Below are positions 6,248-54,625 of a DNA stretch of 64,000 bases, in pieces. The stretch comes from Neoconidiobolus thromboides FSU 785 (Eukaryota; Fungi; Entomophthoromycota). Numbering within the stretch: the stretch's first letter is position 1; every line of letters starts with the position of its first letter. The notes beneath the pieces were generated by a model. It saw nothing but the letters and a program-made list of their open reading frames with translations. It was not told the origin of the DNA and made no database searches. Both the position numbers and the translations under genes were made by a program. Location of the stretch: contig MU626270.1 in the NCBI GenBank assembly GCA_025603075.1, positions 1 through 64,000 of the forward strand, read 5' to 3'.

Positions 6248-6518
6248 AAATTCAATATACAAACAAAATGATAGGTGTAGTTTAATTTAGTGGTTGAAAT
6301 TTATAATAAAGTAATTTTAAACCAACTTTTTAAAATAACAATTTAACCTTTGACTGCACGATTAGTTTTTTGATTAAATACAAACTTTGTACACAGCAGT
6401 AAATGACGATTGCTTGTAGCATTAAGTTATTCTTTAAGAAACAAAAGCATCCTCCTTTACATGTATACTATTTCGTACAACTACTACTATACATTTTGTA
6501 GCCTTTAAATCGTTATAT

Positions 6519-6616
6519 GGGGATGTGTTTTTTAGTTTCATTACTTTTCCATTTTTCAAACATTATTTAAGTGGAAAAACTGCTAGTAAAATTCTTAAAC
6601 GAAAAAATACATTCTC
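6519..6616 (-). mobile_element. MITE family A copy 2
   Basis: Reverse-complement copy; flanks ATAT/ATAT. Confidence 0.85.
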
Positions 6617-6948
6617 ATATGAAGATGTTCAAATTGATTTCAGGATTTAGTTGTAAACTCGAATCCTAACTTTTTAAATTTATAAGTGCTTAAATGTATG
6701 ATTAGTTAAGTTTAAAAAGCTTAAAATTAAATTCAAAAATTTATTATTTATTATTTATAATGATAAATTTAATCAAACAATATATAGAACTAATGCCTTG
6801 AAAGCTTCAGTATATTTTCTTAATGAATATAAAAGTTATGGATTTAATATAAGAAGAGATTACTATAATTGTCTAAAAATAATTAATAATAATAAAATAC
6901 TAATACTGTAACCCGTTATTAAAAATAAGTAAATCAAAATTACTATAT

Positions 6949-7114: not shown

Positions 7115-7212
7115 GGGATGTATTTTTGTATTTAAGGATTTTACTAACAATTTTTCTGCTCAAATAGCGCTTAAAAAGTAGAAAAGGTAATGAAGTCAAA
7201 AAAAACAGCCCC
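7115..7212 (+). mobile_element. MITE family A copy 4
   Basis: GGGATGTATTTTTGTATTTAAGGATTTTACTAAC...CAAATAGCGCTTAAAA...ACAGCCCC. Confidence 0.85.
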
Positions 7213-7368
7213 ATATACTAAATAAAAATGGGAAAATAATATATAGTAAATATTTTAAAAATGAAACAGTAACTAGGTTAATATTTAAATACATATTAAA
7301 TACATATTAAATAATTTTAAAAATCTACTAAAAAAACAGATTTATATAATATATGTGCCCCAGTATAT

Positions 7369-7466
7369 GGGAATATTTTTTTAGCTTCAGCATTTTTTCC
7401 ATCTTTTAAGCGCTATTTGAGTGGAAAAATTGTTAGTAAAATTCTTAAATACAAAAATACATCCCC
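7369..7466 (-). mobile_element. MITE family A copy 5
   Basis: Reverse-complement copy; flanks ATAT/ATAT. Confidence 0.85.
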
Positions 7467-7689
7467 ATATAATTAAAAAGAGTTGTTTGAAACAAAACAA
7501 ATGTGTTAATAAAAAATACAACAAAGATAAAAAAATCTTTTAATAAAAAAAATTATATAAATCCTATGAATTTTATGTTGATACTCAAAAAATTGTGTTT
7601 AATAAAACCGTGAAATATCGCTTTGTCAGCTTTATGATTGACTATAACATAACAATCACTTAAGTTGTTATGTTCTCGAGTTCAGGCGC

Positions 7690-14485: not shown

Positions 14486-15756
14486 GATATAAAAAGATTC
14501 TTTTTAATTTGGATGATTTTTTTATAAAAAATCAATAGCATCCCTTTGATCTCGTCACTTGAGCCAATCATATACAGGTTTCAATGATATGCTTTGTTGT
14601 AGTAAAAAATCATTTTTAATGCTTTCTTGTTTGTTATTGATGCTTATTAATAATATAGTTTAATAAAATGTCTATATAGTTATTTTGTTATCATTTATAT
14701 GATTAAAACTAGTATTATGAGATAGCATATCAATAATTAGAATAATATTTTTACTTTTATCTAGTAAAATTTTGCTTATGAGTTAACTTTTTACTAGAAT
14801 ATGAATCTTTTTAAATTTTATAGTATTGAACGATTAAAATCGATACATACCAGACTAGATAGCTCAAAGAACCAGTTTTAAAAAATATGCCTAATATTAC
14901 AATGAATATATCAACAGCTCAATGTTTTATAGATTCTATGTTTTTAGTTATATTTTCAATACAATAGGAGTAAGTAAATAAAATTAATAAGATCAATCAA
15001 AGCCTCAACCAGATGCTGAATTTTATTCAACGAAAACCAATTTTACTAGAAATTCATTCATTAAATACTATTTAAAGTCTTATATAATATTTAAACTATT
15101 TACAGGACAATAAATTAAAATTTTTTATAGTTGAATCGTTGTCAAATTCGAATGAAAAATGTTATAATACTATTTACAACTTTAAATAGATCTAAATTAA
15201 CTTTTTAAGGAGCTTGATTTTTATTTAGTAATTTAATAATGCTTAAAAATATCTATTTAATCGTATTATTTTGTTTCATTTATTCTTATTTCATCAAATA
15301 TAGAACTAAAAGTGTGAAACTTACAGAACATTTCAACGACTATATATTCATTGTAGGTATTTTCTTGAGCACTTTCACATTCTTTTGTAAAAAGCATGTA
15401 AGGAATATACAATTGCAATAGGTAAATTTCTACATTAAAGAATTTATGTTTGTAGGCAAAATAAATAGAATTTTTTCTATTAAACAGCTCAAAAATGAAA
15501 ATCTCTATTGTAACTAATATCCTTTTTTAAAAAAAGATGAGATTATTTATGAATATATTTAATATTAATCTCACTTGTTTTGTTTTTAACTAAAGATTAT
15601 TTATAAAGTAAAAATTATTTTAAACTAGAAATATACTTATCAATATGTTTAGCTAATAATTCAATTCACTTTGTTTAATAAAGGTTAGGAAAGTACATAC
15701 TAAATGGACAATCGACTTAGAGATTATTATTATTTGACTATAAATGATTAATATAT

Positions 15757-15855
15757 AGAAGTGTTTTTTTTGGTTTCATTACTTTCTCTATTTTTTAAGC
15801 GCTATTTGAGTAAGAAAGTTATTAGTAAAATTTTAAAACAAAAAAACATATCCCC
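15757..15855 (-). mobile_element. MITE family A copy 8
   Basis: Reverse-complement copy ending ...CATATCCCC-ATAT. Confidence 0.8.
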
Positions 15856-16483
15856 ATATAATGAACATTTATGTATTATGCGGCTTTTATAATGTATAAA
15901 GGTATAATTAACTTTTTATCCTTACTTCTTTATTATAATAGAACGTGTTAGAACTTTATTATTGTCAAATTAAATACTGTGTTTGTAACTTCATATTTAG
16001 TTTAATAGAGAAGCCAGTTCAAGCACTTTGTAAAAATAAAGATAAATGTAAAAACTCTAATGACTTATATACAAATGTTAAAACCTACTGACAATATTTT
16101 TGAAACCTAAAATTGGGATAAATAGAATAAAGGTATAATTTTAATTCAAGCAATCTTCTTGCTAAATATCAACAAATAGTACAGTAAGACAAGTTAGTTT
16201 TAATTTGAGGTCCATTTTTCCTTACTTTGATTTATTGTAAAAGGTAGATCAAGCATAAATATTAAAAATTAAAGTGTATGTTTTTTTATTTAAAGAAATT
16301 GATTAAGTTAAATTAAACTTAGATTCTTTTGAAAAATAAAAAATAAAAAATAAAAACACCATCCCTGTTTTTTTGCTAGTTTTACAAATTATGGTTTTAA
16401 TATACAGTATTTTTATTACATTACGGCTATAGCAAGAAATTTTTAATCAAATAGGGAATTTTTTCTTTTTGTAACTATGATTT

Positions 16484-17154: not shown

Positions 17155-17248
17155 GATGATATTTTTTGATTTCATTACTTTTCCCATTTTTTGAGCGCTA
17201 TTTGAGCAGAAAGATTGTTATTAAAATTCTTAAGCAAAATACATTCCC
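17155..17248 (-). mobile_element. MITE family A copy 11
   Basis: Reverse-complement copy; flanks ATAT/ATAT. Confidence 0.8.
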
Positions 17249-17444
17249 ATATTGTGAAAAAAATTCGGAGGATTTAAATCATTATTTTAGTACTTATCTC
17301 CGCACCCACCATACAGAAACCTAGACTAATTAAGCATTCATAAATTAATTTATTCCCTCTTTTTTGCTATAATGTTCTACTTTCACATACAGCATTTGAT
17401 CTGTCAGTGAAACTCTAATTTAACACATTAATTAAATAGCATAT

Positions 17445-17543
17445 GGGGATGTATTTTTGCGTTTAAGAATTTTGTTAGCAAATTTTCCGCTTAGATAGCG
17501 CTTAAAAAATGGAAGAAATAATGAAGTTAAAAAAGACACTCCC
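17445..17543 (+). mobile_element. MITE family A copy 12
   Basis: Full copy; flanks ATAT/ATAT. Confidence 0.85.
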
Positions 17544-19085
17544 ATATACTGAAATAAATATATCAAGTTTTAAGGTTTAAAATTTATGGGATAATATATA
17601 TCAATAGTCAAAAATTAAATAGTTTAAAAAATATTATACTTAAGCAATATATATCACATAAGCACAAAGAAGCAAGGGTTTAAAAATTAGCTTGTTCAAC
17701 TTTTATTGCTTTTCAATGAGCCAATGGATACTTCATTAGTGTTGTTTTTTGTATAGGAATTTATTAAATTGAATTATTTATCTAAATTGTCAAACTAAAG
17801 CTTTACTGAGCCAAATCAAGTGCTATAAAAATCTGTATCATTATTATGGATTAATATTAAGTAGGTTTTTATATGCTCAGATTTTTATGCAATTTCTATA
17901 AATTGTAGCCATTTATAACTGGAATGGCTACACGTTATTGAATCTTCAAAAACCATAGAATATAAAAATCTACCTGATACTATAACTGAATCAAAGATTC
18001 AATACAGCTGTTGCAACTATTTTACGACTTTTTTAGCAATAACTTTTATGATAAAACTCTTTGTTTGGCCAATTTTTTAGTGTGTGATCGGTATAATTTT
18101 TGAGCTAATTTTAACACAAAGTGTTTTCTTTAATGAATAGTTAATTAGATCGAAAAAGAGCTGGAATAGCTATAGAATATTTGAGGGGTTATACCCTTTT
18201 AAGCTTTTTTTTATAACAAAAATCTAAAAGGTAATTTCGATGACGTAACATAGATTATAACTTAAGCCCATGATCAATATGATTTACAAATAAAATGATC
18301 ACTAAAACAAAATAAATTTTGAAATAAAAAAAATGAAATAGTAAAGCTTATTAAAATCCCGAAACCATTACTTGGACAATTATAGTTTAAATATCACTAT
18401 TAAAAATTAAAGTGCAAAAGCTTAAAACAGGGCTTAATTTTACGATCATTTATGTTGAAAAGAAGATAGGTTTTGGTATAATGGTGGCTTAATATTGTTT
18501 GTAAACTTTGTATATTTGTTAGAATTAAGAATAATCTATGAATGAGACGTATCAAGAATAGAGGATTTAGAATGCTACTGTTGGGGTGAGTATATTTTGA
18601 AATGAGGATATATCATTTACTTTAACTACAGTTCAATATTATATACTTTTATTGGCCTTATTGCAATTTATTATTTTTGTTTAAAATGATGCATTTATAC
18701 TATATAGTTTTAGCGATATCCTGCCATAAACTATTAAAATCTACTATTTCAAATCACTTATAAAATATGAATAAACTTAATTTAGTAGTTCTACTTAAAT
18801 TAGCATTATTACCAAAGATATAAAAGGTCTAGTTTAAGTTGTTTATAACTTGTATCTCCATTTAAATATTAAAAAACAAATATTTAATAACTTCTTGACT
18901 CATTTACCACTATCAAATTTATTTAATTTTAGAGCTTAGTATCTACCTCAACTACTAAAATTCATGTTATTTTCATAATCTTTTCTGATTTTTTACTTGA
19001 TTTACCAATCTTAAAATCTCTTAACTGCCAAACTCATAGCCAACCAAAAAGTATAAAATCAACTTGAAGTACAAATTTAAATAGC

Positions 19086-24516: not shown

Positions 24517-26964
24517 CTAAAAGTGAATACCAAGCTTTTGGGCTTGTTGAATAGCAGACGGATATCCAAGGGAGGCAGACTTGATAAGCATTTCCCTTGC
24601 TAAAAGAGGATTGCGTGATGTACCTCTACCAGCCGCATACGCTGCAAACAGATGGTAATATCCCTTACGATTCCCAAGCTCAGCCGACCTTTTAAAATAG
24701 CTGAATGCTTTTACCAGATCTAAATTAGGATTATCACTATCTCTATAAACCAAACCGAGTAAATCCAAAGCATCAGAGTCATCTGCTGCAGCAGCCCTCT
24801 CAAGGTGAAAGGTAGCTAAGGGTATATTCTTTTCAACTACTTTTTCTTGACCCCAAAAGTAATAGTAACCTAAAAAGTAATCCGCACGGGTATAGCCATA
24901 TCTTTGTAATTCCGTAAACTTATCAAACGCCTCTTGATTTCTTCTTTCATTATGATCAATCACTGCTTGTTCCATTAGTTCTAATGGATCCTGAAGAAGG
25001 GATGCTATATTTTCTCCTTCTAATATGTCCGTACGATCCGTCTCATGTTCTCCAAATTGTGAATTTTCCAAGGATCGCAAGCCTCTTGCTCGAAAAGAGG
25101 TATTTGGAGATGTATCTGCTGGTGGGCTGATAGGGTAATCAAAGGTACCATTTGAGTTGTTATTTATCATGGGCGACTGGTTATATTGACTATGTACGCT
25201 CCTATATTCAGTGGCGCTTCCAGGGGGTGATTGTAAAGGAGTAGTTGCTCTAGGTTGATTGTTGATATTCGTTTGATCATTTGAATTGTTATGAAATGGA
25301 TAACTATAAGAACTAGTAGCTCTATATTCACTATTTATATTACTAGAATGTGGTTGTGTAAAATATCCACTATCAACCTGATAGTTTGAATTTCTAGTAT
25401 CAACAGAACCATTAGATGAAGGAACATGGTGGACATTGGCAGAAGTTCCAATTTTTACATGCTGTATTTGGTTAGTAATTTTAGTAACCTCATCATTTGT
25501 GTGGTTGTTTTTATTTTCTAAATATGAGGTTTGTGTGCTCATTAAAGAACCTGGAGGAGTTTTTTCCATTGTGGATTCTCTATCAAATTCTTTTGATACA
25601 GTTTGATCAATATCGTTGATAAGTTGTGCAGAAGTCGGTCTTTTATTTGTATCTTCATGAAAACATAATTTAATAATGGGCAAAATTAATGGATTTACAA
25701 TTGTCATATCCTCTCTTCCTCCATTAAGAACATATTCTTCAACAGCTTGTCTATCTTTAAAAGATTGATAAGGATAACGCCCAGTCCATAAGGACCATAA
25801 TACCATCCCCACACTATACACATCACCTCCTTGTGTAGAAGCAGCATAAGACCTAATTTTCTCTGGAGGAATCCAACGATGCCTGTCAGAACCCAAATCA
25901 ACTACAGGTACTGTGTATATATCTACATCTGTTTCACGACTGAATTCAAACCCTGATATTTTTGCTTTGTATTCTGAAGTAACCATGATACTACTGGTCT
26001 TAATATTTTTATGAAGAATACCAAGATTATGCAAAAAAGCCACCCCTTCAACAATATTTGTGGTCATATTAATCATGACTGGAGTTTCTAAAGTTTGTCC
26101 GGAGGCCAAAACTTCTTTAAGGTTCCCTAGGCTTGCATATTCTGTAATCAAACCAAAGGAAGTGGACTTTTTATGGGTACCGTAAAATTTGATAATAAAT
26201 GGACAAACTTCAAGTTTCTTTAGAATAGCAACTTGCTTATAAATTTGTGTGAGTACTTTCTTATCATTTAATGAGCCACGGTAGACTTTTTCTGCTACCT
26301 CTACTGATTTATATATACGCTTGTGTACTGCAAAATTCCTTCCTTGCCTTGGTGATTCTCCCGGTATAACCTTGATTTGTCGGTCAGGTAACTCTAGGCC
26401 CTCTAGATTCATATTTGTAGAAGAATTTACCTCTTGAATTTGACTTAAAAGCTGAGTTCTATCAGCATCGGTGCCATTAACATTTCCTTTCATATCATCA
26501 ATATTGTTGGTAGATAGATTTAGTGCATTTTCAGTACTAATAAGGGCTTTATCAGATTCTGGACCAGCTGAAAAATTAGCAGAAAGGCTATGTTTCAGTG
26601 CAGATAACGATTTTTCAATTTCTTGTGATAGCAATAAAAGGGACTTTTTGTAAGTATCCCTTTGAATAAAACGCATAAACATACCCTTACTAGCAAATTC
26701 GGTAAGAAATCCAAGGATAGAATCCAAAAGCCTTAAATAATTCGAAAAAGTTAAATAGTAACGTTTATTTTCGAAATAAATGATATTGGATTCATAAGAA
26801 TTAATTAAGTCTTCGACGTATTTATGACTTTGTAATATTTTCCCTTCTAACGTTTTACAAGCTACTTTACTATGTTTATATCCTTTAAGCATAAGCGTTA
26901 TACGCCCTTGTAGATTTTGAGCTTTAAAAAGCAACAGTTTTGTCTCAAACCTTTTATCATTCAT
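24517..26964 (-). CDS. MLKL-like protein: N-terminal helical domain + TKL-type pseudokinase + low-complexity linker + Sel1 repeats
   Basis: Intronless 815 aa ORF; VAEK, HKNIKTSS (HRD replaced), KISGFEFSR (DFG replaced by GFE), RWIPPE; C-terminal Sel1-like repeats (ADYFLGYYY..G, ALDLLGLVY, GYYHLFAAYAAGRG). Confidence 0.85.
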   Translation of the reverse strand: MNDKRFETKLLLFKAQNLQGRITLMLKGYKHSKVACKTLEGKILQSHKYVEDLINSYESNIIYFENKRYYLTFSNYLRLLDSILGFLTEFASKGMFMRFIQRDTYKKSLLLLSQEIEKSLSALKHSLSANFSAGPESDKALISTENALNLSTNNIDDMKGNVNGTDADRTQLLSQIQEVNSSTNMNLEGLELPDRQIKVIPGESPRQGRNFAVHKRIYKSVEVAEKVYRGSLNDKKVLTQIYKQVAILKKLEVCPFIIKFYGTHKKSTSFGLITEYASLGNLKEVLASGQTLETPVMINMTTNIVEGVAFLHNLGILHKNIKTSSIMVTSEYKAKISGFEFSRETDVDIYTVPVVDLGSDRHRWIPPEKIRSYAASTQGGDVYSVGMVLWSLWTGRYPYQSFKDRQAVEEYVLNGGREDMTIVNPLILPIIKLCFHEDTNKRPTSAQLINDIDQTVSKEFDRESTMEKTPPGSLMSTQTSYLENKNNHTNDEVTKITNQIQHVKIGTSANVHHVPSSNGSVDTRNSNYQVDSGYFTQPHSSNINSEYRATSSYSYPFHNNSNDQTNINNQPRATTPLQSPPGSATEYRSVHSQYNQSPMINNNSNGTFDYPISPPADTSPNTSFRARGLRSLENSQFGEHETDRTDILEGENIASLLQDPLELMEQAVIDHNERRNQEAFDKFTELQRYGYTRADYFLGYYYFWGQEKVVEKNIPLATFHLERAAAADDSDALDLLGLVYRDSDNPNLDLVKAFSYFKRSAELGNRKGYYHLFAAYAAGRGTSRNPLLAREMLIKSASLGYPSAIQQAQKLGIHF

Positions 26965-27733
26965 TTTATCTAATCAATTTAGTTAGCTGAGTTAACTTTG
27001 ATATCAGTACTATATGAGATTTATAATGATGAATTGAATTACCTTTAAATTGACAAAAGAAATGTAAATTTTAGATATGATATATAAAAAGAAAGGTCCA
27101 CTTTACTAAAAAATAAGAAAAAAATAAAGAGCGCTCTCAGAGTTAAAACTAAAAAGCAACATTTTAAATTGTCATGATTTATATTTAAGTCTCTCAAATA
27201 ATTTTCGTACGATTGGTTGGAAAATGTTCTGTCTAAACCCCAAACTTAGCATTTTAATGTTCTTTTGTTGAATATTTTATAAGTATTTTACTTATTACCC
27301 TTTTTAATTTCATTGGCTTAAAAAACAGAATTTCACCAATTGTTTAATAACATCACAAAAATGCCCTTCAACTTTAGCGATATTAAAGTTTACATTGCTA
27401 GTTGAGATTATAGTATAAGTTCATTAAATATATATATAATAGATCATAAATAGTTAAATACAAAATATTAACATAAATCAAAATTTACAAAAATAAAGTC
27501 AGCAAATATTTGCATTAAAAAATTCTAAGATACAGTGTTCTTATTGAAAATTTAGAATTGTTTATCCCTTATTCATATTAAATAAAGAAGTAACAATGAG
27601 ATTTAAGATTAAAATAATGACATTATGTCGGATAATAATCTACAATTCATAATGTATTTTGTATTTTATACATATCTGTAATTCATTGGTTTTATTTTTA
27701 GGTAGACGAATTTAATTTACTAAAGATCTATTA

Positions 27734-29103: not shown

Positions 29104-29771
29104 TTTTTAACAAAAAGGAGATTTTATTTTAGTGTTATGGAATATATTCAATAATTTTATAGTTCACTTATTTTGTTATTCAGGCTGTTTGCCTTTCAAT
29201 AATAACTTGTTCTTAACTTTTTCTTTTAGATCTAAATAAGCCGAGATTAAATCAAACTTATAAAGAATGATCTTATATTGATTAGTAATGTTACTTTCAT
29301 AATACATCAAAAGTATATACTGTTTTTGATTTTAATCAAAATTAATATTAATTAGTAGTACTTATTATAGGCTTTTGTATATAACGCTAGATTTAGGTAT
29401 TTGAGCTTTCAATCTTTTGAATCTGTTATCCGGTACTTCTGGTGTTTAAACCAACAAATTTAATTTTTCCCTTAAAAGACAAATTAAACACATGTGCTAA
29501 AAACAAATCCTTTGAGTCATTGATTTCCTTCAATGAAAGGAGACATTAGAGGTAAAAGTCAAATACTATGGACTTTACTATTTTATTGAAATAAACCTAC
29601 AATTTTACCATAAACTCCTTTTACCATAAGAATAATTTTGTTAAACTATCTCTCACTTTTTACTTTTAAGTTCAAAAATTACATAATCAACTAGCACCTT
29701 TATGTGAATTTAACTAGTAGTTTGAAATAAATAAAAGTACTTCAAAGAATAAAAGGTATTTTACAATATAT

Positions 29772-29970
29772 GAGGGTGTTTTTTGGTTTCATCATTTTTT
29801 CCACCTTTAAGCGCTGTTTGAGTGAAAAAATTGTTAGTAAAGTTCTTAAACAAAAAAAGCATCCTACATATGGAAGTGTTTATTTTGACTTCATTACTTT
29901 TTCCGTTTTTTAAACACTACTTAAGTGGGAAATTTGTTAGTAAAATTCTTAAACACAAAAATATATCCCC
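29772..29970 (-). mobile_element. MITE family A copies 13+14, tandem pair
   Basis: 29772-29867 and 29872-29970 joined by a single ATAT; outer flanks ATAT. Confidence 0.85.
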
Positions 29971-30454
29971 ATATAGTAATATATTATATTTTTTCATTTA
30001 TAAAATAAAACTTTCGATTTAAAAGTATAGAATGTACTTTTTTTCTAAGTATAGCTTTTATTTTTGCCATTTTTAAACTTGGAACTTAAAAGCATAAGAC
30101 TTAGTATTTTTATCAAAGCCTTACACTATAAAACATTTTGTAATTTTTTCTTATATTGACGCAACTTTTTCACTCTAAATATTTACATATCTTTAATGAT
30201 TACATGTATAATATTTTTTAGACATTAAAAGGTTTATAACTCTTTTGTTTTGATTGTATTTTTTTAATTTTAGCAAGATATTTAAAACTTGATTTTTGAA
30301 ATACCAAAACAAATTTACTGCTTACAATAATATAGTTTATAATATTTCTTGTTAAATTGTAATAAAAGGTAAAAGATTTTTAATATTTGATTATTTTCTA
30401 TCCACTCTGTTTTATTTTCTTAGTTAAAAATTAATATTGATATCTATCATTATT

Positions 30455-35001: not shown

Positions 35002-35162
35002 TTTTTTCAGATTCCGAGATTACTTATTGTTATAGAAATAGACCTTTACAATAGATTTTAGTTATTATTATTAAATTTATTAAAATTTGAATATTCAAGA
35101 GTATAATAAATATGATTATATTAAACTAAATTTATAACAGTATTTTTGTAGAATCAAGATAT

Positions 35163-35363
35163 GGGGATGTATTTTTGTGTTTAAGAATTTTATTAACAAT
35201 CTTTCCGCTCAAGTAGCGCTTAAAAACGGAAAAAGTAATGAAATCAAAAAAAAACATCACCATATGGAGGATGTATTTTTATGTTTAAGAATTTTACTAA
35301 TAATTTTTCCACTCAAATAGCGCTTAAAGATAGAAAAAGTAATGAAGCCAAAAAAACACCTCT
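35163..35363 (+). mobile_element. MITE family A copies 16+17, tandem pair
   Basis: 35163-35261 and 35266-35363 joined by a single ATAT; lies between convergent 3' ends. Confidence 0.85.
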
Positions 35364-35525
35364 ATATAGTTTTTTTAATAATCTAGTAAAATTAACAAAC
35401 TATAAGAGTTGACACTTTTAATTAAAAGCTTTATTAAACCTAAAAGTTACTTATAATATATAATATAAAAGATAATTGAAGTAATAAACATAAAACCAAG
35501 ATTGCATAAATAGACAAATAAAAAA

Positions 35526-54141: not shown

Positions 54142-54433
54142 GTACATTAAAATAATTAATTTTAGTTGTTTATATTTAATAAACATTACAGTTTAAAATT
54201 TCATTATTAAATTATTTAGCATTCCCCTATATTAAAAATAGTGTTATAACTTGTATCATAAAATCTAAAATACTTTAACATATCAATTTAGATTTAAGCA
54301 ATACCATTCAATTATTGATATCAATTTGACTAAATAAATAACTCAGCTAATTCTGTTTCTATTATATTTTAATATAAAAAAGTATAAATAAAAAAACATT
54401 ATTTTCATAAATAACCTTATTTTTTTACTATAT

Positions 54434-54530
54434 GGGAATGTATTTTTGTTTAAGAATTTTACTAACAAATTTTCCGCTCAAATAGTGCTTAAAAAATGGA
54501 AAAAGTAATGAAGTCAAAAAAAACACCCCC
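54434..54530 (+). mobile_element. MITE family A copy 18
   Basis: Full copy; flanks ATAT/GTAT; between convergent 3' ends. Confidence 0.85.
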
Positions 54531-54625
54531 GTATACACTTTTAGTTTTAATTAATACATCAATAAAAATATACAACATAATTCATAAACATAATACAAAA
54601 CGTTCTATTTTTATTAACCTTTTCT

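Follow-up and report, generated by a model that had tools for sequence, protein, structure and literature searches.

MLKL-type execution has been thoroughly documented in vertebrates and of late also in plants, and the related helical bundles of fungi have mostly been studied as HeLo/HELL domains acting under amyloid templating in Dikarya. A locus of the entomophthoralean fungus Neoconidiobolus thromboides FSU 785 raises the question of whether an early-diverging fungus keeps the complete MLKL layout in one polypeptide and, if so, whether that polypeptide serves as an executioner of cell death. The window analyzed here is a stretch of 64,000 nucleotides (positions 1 to 64,000 of contig MU626270.1, assembly GCA_025603075.1), which contains, at 24517..26964 of the minus strand, a complete coding sequence (CDS) of 815 codons plus stop, taken from the list of open reading frames (ORFs), with an ATG start and no intron; all gene parts described below lie on the same strand. 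The original prediction, made from the DNA letters, read the product as an MLKL-like pseudokinase fused to Sel1 repeats, i.e., a candidate sensor, switch and executioner in a single protein. Our analysis makes MLKL homology and the corresponding architecture very probable. On balance, we favor the view of a fungal MLKL-family protein, built of a four-helix bundle, a two-helix brace and a dead tyrosine kinase-like (TKL) pseudokinase and extended by a linker and Sel1 repeats, that by analogy would operate as a switch-executioner; the executioner function, taken by itself, is proposed more tentatively.

An MLKL-Type Bundle and Brace

The AlphaFold2 (AF2) model of the N-terminal region, computed on 65 sequences, displays four helices (residues 4–27, 33–64, 67–100 and 102–132) followed by two more (135–160 and 166–183). 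Its mean predicted local distance difference test score (pLDDT) is 82, rising above 90 across residues 10–130 and staying moderate (about 52–75) in the last two helices; a helical N-terminus of about 130 amino acids modeling as a four-helix bundle, as originally proposed, is thereby confirmed. The bundle corresponds to residues 1–132 (26569..26964) and the two-helix brace, which separates it from the kinase-like domain, to residues 133–199 (26368..26568), as delimited by the AF2 helices and by a profile alignment with mouse MLKL (4btf) that runs through residue 195 of the mouse chain. The two parts differ sharply in charge, the basic bundle (isoelectric point, pI, 9.65) adjoining an acidic brace (pI 4.18).

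Relationship to MLKL was assessed by profile comparison. The window protein alone gives no direct Pfam MLKL_N match, and its close homologue P0007 matches this family directly but weakly (24.4 bits, E 2.3e-5, cutoff 27). A profile built from the N-termini of its clade recovered 140 proteins at E<=1e-3 from 1.84 billion representative proteins searched, among them proteins of Diversispora (1e-20) and Ambispora (6e-12) as well as a fern MLKL-like protein. Among the 93 profile matches scanned by Pfam, MLKL_N was found in 73 (best E 8.9e-17), a kinase domain in 55 and Sel1 in 28; HeLo and Helo_like_N were absent from the 25 Pfam families with most members matched, and of the related families SesA alone matched, in 2/93. 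Thus, where the original prediction had left a choice between an MLKL-type and a HeLo-like bundle, these counts point to MLKL_N specifically and not to HeLo/HELL.

Alignment of the entomophthoralean N-termini with the remaining proteins by hhalign (Prob 99.7, E 5.8e-26) extended over 192 columns and covered both bundle and brace. The seven top PDB matches of the enlarged N-terminal profile are all MLKL: full-length mouse MLKL 4btf (E 1.9e-8, residues 9–195, from the bundle through the brace to the start of the kinase-like domain), five sequences of the human N-terminal domain (about 8e-7) and full-length 6lk5 (2.5e-6), vs. E 0.0025 for the best non-MLKL match. A language-model search with residues 1–200 returned MLKL_N, DUF7792/MCAfunc and RPW8 clusters as neighbors. 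Judged by these comparisons, the bundle is homologous to Pfam MLKL_N (PF22215), a link beyond mere resemblance.

A Degenerate TKL Kinase Domain

The pseudokinase occupies residues 200–460 (25585..26367), as outlined by Pfam (PK_Tyr_Ser-Thr at residues 219–451, E 3.5e-33), a motif table, invariant columns and a PDB profile. Alignments with CTR1 and with the family place the sequence RQGRNF at the GxGxxG position, so that the Gly-rich loop is degenerate, retain the beta3 lysine (VAEK; K226, 26287–26289) and put Q244 at the position of the alphaC Glu. The HRD position is taken by H318-K319-N320 (HKN, 26005–26013), that of the catalytic Asn by S325 (C in one homologue) and DFG by G338-F339-E340 (GFE, 25945–25953). 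The nine closest homologues share these states with little or no variation, and every one listed in the original prediction (VAxK kept, Q, HKN, S, GFE, no Gly-rich loop) was recovered in the alignments. The domain thus combines a kinase fold with loss of the catalytic machinery, and we predict it to be catalytically dead.

An active atypical kinase that uses unconventional catalytic residues and carries a coiled-coil N-terminus unrelated to MLKL would be in keeping with the retention of K226 and of the PPE motif and with the strong conservation of the domain. However, the clade has invariantly substituted the alphaC Glu as well as the Asp of HRD, the catalytic Asn and the Asp of DFG, and the N-terminal homology to MLKL_N is strong, which together make such a kinase the least credible of the alternatives considered here. 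For the pseudokinase that we prefer, the most conserved stretch of the entire protein is the activation segment following GFE, which includes WIPPEK and three residues, S342, T351 and S359, that are invariant in the family alignment.

When the kinase profile of the clade was compared with single kinase domains of the PDB, the highest scores were obtained for CTR1 (142 bits), MLKL (139.5, 138.6 and 136.7), RIPK1 (134.8) and ZAK (133.5), the next being about 121, a result that places the domain among the TKL kinases closest to MLKL and RIPK; on the question of a fusion ancestor in common with animal MLKL, the MLKL scores (136.7–139.5 bits) are level with those of CTR1 and RIPK1. A language-model search based on the kinase portion yielded nothing beyond generic TKL clusters.

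Across the wider fungal family, catalytic decay is graded, as read from the motif table. Most Glomeromycota-type members aligned at the motifs have VACK, an HxD..N loop (commonly HHDIRCEN) and NF-x for DFG, and the Mortierella members have HKTLRAKN at the catalytic loop; in the entomophthoralean Sel1 clade, the HRD Asp, the catalytic Asn and the DFG Asp are all lost (HKN..S, GFE). In some proteins of Glomeromycota, namely P0028 (1360 aa, from Diversispora epigaea) and P0039 (1046 aa), the MLKL_N-pseudokinase unit lies behind one or two extra kinase domains of the same polypeptide, which carry HKD/HRD/HGD and DLG/DFG motifs and could represent a built-in activating kinase.

Linker and Sel1 Tail

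The pseudokinase is followed by a Ser/Asn/Thr/Pro-rich, disordered linker (residues 461–655, 25000..25584), in which pLDDT falls below 35 in the full-length AF2 model and which aligns poorly among homologues save for its last 25 or so residues; its composition and low pLDDT agree with the S/N-rich linker described originally. The alignable end, directly before the Sel1 cassette, holds an acidic motif, F-x-E-T-R/D...D...L (residues ~628–655, window 25000–25080), common to both entomophthoralean subclades, whose linkers are otherwise unalignable. As a matter of speculation, this motif might be an intramolecular latch for the basic bundle or a docking motif. Another stretch of the linker, 'IQHVKIG', was considered as a RHIM-like (RIP homotypic interaction motif) or amyloid motif and rejected, being absent as a conserved stretch in homologues.

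Sel1 repeats are generic protein-binding solenoids, as in SEL1L/Hrd3 and Skt5. The C-terminal cassette of the window protein (residues 656–815, 24520..24999) was identified as such by Pfam (E 6.9e-13; 49 bits vs. a cutoff of 30.7; three stretches), by AF2 (roughly nine helices within residues 660–810, forming 4–5 helix pairs, with pLDDT 80–97) and by its match to the Sel1 repeat protein 6ok3 in the PDB (E 2.7e-21). Tandem Sel1 helix pairs assignable to PF08238 are therefore present as predicted; the number of repeats, given originally as 3–4, depends on the method, with three stretches in Pfam and 4–5 helix pairs in AF2. Over its full length of about 155 residues, the cassette can be aligned with the very C-terminal ends of related proteins, those of Glomeromycota type and one from a chytrid among them, which argues for an old and recurrent association of bundle and solenoid. 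The chytrid protein, P0034 (Borealophlyctis nickersoniae KAJ3275315.1, 371 aa), joins an MLKL_N domain that passes the Pfam cutoff (37 bits) directly to Sel1/TPR repeats, with no kinase domain present; the pairing of bundle and Sel1 thus exists without a pseudokinase.

Family, Phylogeny and Distribution

A quick maximum-likelihood tree was built on the bundle and kinase regions. In this tree, the window protein groups with an unnamed transcript-derived protein, Entomophthora muscae P0002 and Massospora cicadina P0003 and P0008 in a clade with 100% support in the SH-aLRT (Shimodaira–Hasegawa-like approximate likelihood ratio test), of which it is the first branch, the branching order being species-tree-like; an orthologue contributed by a Conidiobolus-grade fungus would be expected in just this position. 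The clade is nested in a 14-member entomophthoralean clade (99%) of Sel1-bearing proteins, to which two Conidiobolus coronatus proteins and a second N. thromboides protein, P0040 (gene of 2219 nt, in the same assembly, GCA_025603075.1), also belong. A second entomophthoralean clade is without Sel1, and several family paralogues are found per entomophthoralean genome.

More distant relatives occur in Glomeromycotina (Ambispora, Diversispora, Acaulospora, Dentiscutata, Rhizophagus, Entrophospora) and, with Sel1, in Mortierellomycotina (Mortierella, Modicella). Ambispora CAG8649536.1 and Mortierella alpina KAF9282375.1 share the three-part layout of MLKL_N, (pseudo)kinase and Sel1, with Sel1 at the extreme C-terminus. 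The proteins of these two lineages are linked to the window protein by the N-terminal homology (Prob 99.7) and by loss of the DFG Asp in both, whereas they differ from it in forming a separate clade of the tree and, in many cases, in an extension of 30–60 residues before the bundle. A partial sequence labeled as belonging to a metagenome-assembled genome of Gammaproteobacteria (P0153, MFN7097205.1, 546 aa) combines MLKL_N (54.7 bits) with a kinase domain in which VAVK and DFG are retained and the catalytic loop reads HCEIKSEN, with E at the position of the HRD Asp; the sequence represents either eukaryotic contamination of the bin or a bacterial MLKL_N-kinase.

This distribution tempers the novelty claimed originally, which went too far: Glomeromycotina and Mortierella have the identical three-part design, which is mentioned in PMC8778642, and HELL-kinase/pseudokinase fusions were noted in PMC12881547. 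What is new is a more degenerate, GFE-bearing clade within an already visible early-fungal family of MLKL-like proteins with Sel1. The statement that homologues of the MLKL family (TCDB 1.A.105) with Sel1 occur 'exclusively in Glomeromycotina' (PMC8778642) is contradicted by the MLKL-like Sel1 proteins of the entomophthoralean clade.

Comparison With Known Systems

Vertebrate MLKL (4btf, 6zvo, 2msv) shares with the window protein the order of four-helix bundle, two-helix brace and TKL pseudokinase, as well as GFE for DFG, a retained beta3 lysine and the absence of a catalytic Asp. It differs in that the window protein adds, after the pseudokinase, a disordered linker of 195 residues and a Sel1 solenoid, has lost the alphaC Glu and has HKN at the HRD position, where MLKL has HGK. 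We know of no RIPK3/RHIM pathway in fungi. Plant MLKLs (AtMLKL1-3, wheat Pm13), considered together with RPW8/CC-R, also possess an MLKL_N-type bundle and a kinase-like domain, but their C-terminal extension is a different one, without Sel1, and their similarity to the clade of the window protein is marginal (E ~1e-3).

HET-S, HELLP and the MLKL_NTD-like N-termini of basidiomycete NOD-like receptors (NLRs) belong to the same helical-bundle superfamily (PMC12881547, PMC9815663); in contrast to HeLo/HELL proteins, the regulatory module here would be a pseudokinase with Sel1 repeats instead of prion-like templating. Membership of the window protein among HeLo/HELL amyloid executioners was considered and rejected, with no HeLo domain among the Pfam families listed above, no C-terminal amyloid motif and no adjacent NLR.

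Selection, Genomic Context and Proposed Function

Two RNA runs, discussed below for the structure of the transcript, come from a source (strain or species) diverged by about 3% from the window. The 39 differences from this source that were listed, a partial count because 29 further differences are unlisted, include 32 synonymous and seven non-synonymous ones; five of the seven replacements fall in the disordered linker, and within residues 176–440 (the end of the brace and the pseudokinase) 18/18 listed changes are silent. The gene is under purifying selection.

The original prediction had allowed for an allorecognition effector, that is, a het-like protein or a fast-evolving non-self sensor. 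Such a role would match the function of fungal HeLo/HELL proteins in allorecognition (PMC12881547) and the presence of several family paralogues in each entomophthoralean genome, yet the preponderance of synonymous differences, the location of most replacements in the linker, the retention of orthologues across genera in a species-tree-like order and the lack of an adjoining NLR or amyloid partner all speak against it. One-to-one orthology and strong purifying selection therefore disfavor allorecognition, which we regard as very unlikely, and are compatible with a conserved non-lethal function.

The latter deserves separate consideration. An MLKL-family protein could have a non-lethal job as a scaffold in membrane or cytoskeleton signaling or in trafficking, in which the bundle would tether or gate and the pseudokinase and Sel1 repeats would assemble partners. 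Support for it comes from one-to-one orthologues in distant entomophthoralean genera, from the strict purifying selection seen on every folded domain, from expression observed in several unrelated data sets of RNA and from the generic protein-binding character of Sel1 repeats, and also from the neighbors of the gene, which are ordinary housekeeping genes (a fungal Zn-cluster-type transcription factor, a PAP2 phosphatase, a MOT1 molybdate transporter and a major facilitator superfamily transporter). Nevertheless, the bundle has the strongly basic character that binding of anionic lipids would call for, and all tested members of the MLKL_N/RPW8/HeLo superfamily target membranes and are tied to cell death or immunity (PMC12881547); on this evidence we consider a non-lethal scaffold unlikely, if by no means fanciful. 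A two-gene immune cluster was also considered and rejected, the neighbors being ordinary.

For the switch-executioner that we favor, the behavior of MLKL in animals and plants serves as the model: the pseudokinase and brace would keep the basic bundle inactive until a signal frees it, whereupon it would oligomerize and attack or gate a membrane. The signal would most plausibly be phosphorylation of the activation segment (S342, T351, S359), binding of a partner to the Sel1 repeats, or both. For the Sel1 tail, a role as protein-binding module in regulation or recruitment is more likely than one as sensor of small ligands, and the chytrid MLKL_N-Sel1 protein suggests that Sel1 may act directly on, or for, the bundle. 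A bolder version, which we consider decidedly improbable, would treat the MLKL_N bundle with Sel1 as an ancient fungal death or immunity module, accompanied by a kinase-like domain in zygomycete lineages and lacking one in a chytrid, in which Sel1 is a built-in receptor that keeps the bundle clamped pending the arrival of a partner, such as a protein of microbial, viral or damaged-self origin, and the GFE pseudokinase shares a fusion ancestor with animal MLKL; if true, it would imply a necroptosis-type executioner in the opisthokont ancestor.

Several observations weigh against the executioner reading and its structural basis. The link to MLKL is transitive, because a profile built from the N-termini of the clade alone (nine sequences) failed to reach MLKL in the PDB and returned chance helical matches (best E 0.09). 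Foldseek comparison with the PDB and Swiss-Prot models gave non-significant E-values, with MLKL, NRG1.1 and RPW8 among the matches; VIA re-alignment was more informative than Foldseek and is not decisive for helical bundles. The full-length AF2 model (nine sequences) reached a predicted template modeling score (pTM) of 0.30 with the kinase domain poorly modeled, and thus carries no information on inter-domain contacts or on docking of the Sel1 tail. Nearby genes include no RIPK3-like activator, kinase, RHIM motif, NLR or amyloid-motif partner, and conservation across genera fits a housekeeping, non-lethal role equally well. The literature consulted yielded no experiments on any fungal protein that combines bundle, pseudokinase and Sel1, and, according to one preprint (bioRxiv 10.1101/681015), plant MLKLs aid immunity with cell death activity accounting for part of this effect only.

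In a broader context, this locus indicates that early-diverging fungi keep the full MLKL layout of bundle, brace and apparently dead kinase, joined to Sel1 repeats, under purifying selection, and that this layout reaches beyond Glomeromycotina, contrary to one survey (PMC8778642). Its compact single-exon CDS offers a test system for killing by a fungal MLKL and for the effect of Sel1 on the switch. The value of these results is limited by the fact that the family is Pfam-annotated in relatives and already mentioned in the literature.

Gene Structure and Other Features of the Window

The start codon of the window protein aligns with the starts of full-length homologues in the family alignment, and the spliced leader contains an in-frame TAA 9–7 nt 5' of the ATG, so that the ORF start stands. 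A 2196-nt contig from an RNA library is colinear with positions 24626–26817 with no differences and no gaps, the flanks being uncovered, and the gene is transcribed. Contigs of the two RNA runs from the diverged source show, at a depth of about 36, a joint (26969->27043) that removes a 73-nt GT..AG intron of the 5' untranslated region (26970..27042), ending 5 nt 5' of the ATG. The gene had been described as intronless, which is correct for the CDS and not for the gene itself.

The 815-aa product has no exact copy in a collection of 15 billion proteins, and no match of at least 90% identity was returned; other proteins of the source genome are present in the same collection. Its absence raises the possibility that the gene is missing from, or modeled differently in, the public annotation, and it may accordingly be unannotated or mis-modeled in the public record.

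The host is an insect-pathogen-type (entomophthoralean) fungus. Apart from the gene, the window contains a family of repeats of about 105 bp (605–707, 6514–6620, 7115–7470, 15748–15859, 17155–17555, 29765–29974, 35156–35372 and 54430–54535), which also occurs as adjacent copies, at 78–88% identity, on the contig of the N. thromboides paralogue P0040 (L001 8953–9285); the G+C content of that contig is 29% and that of the window 27%.

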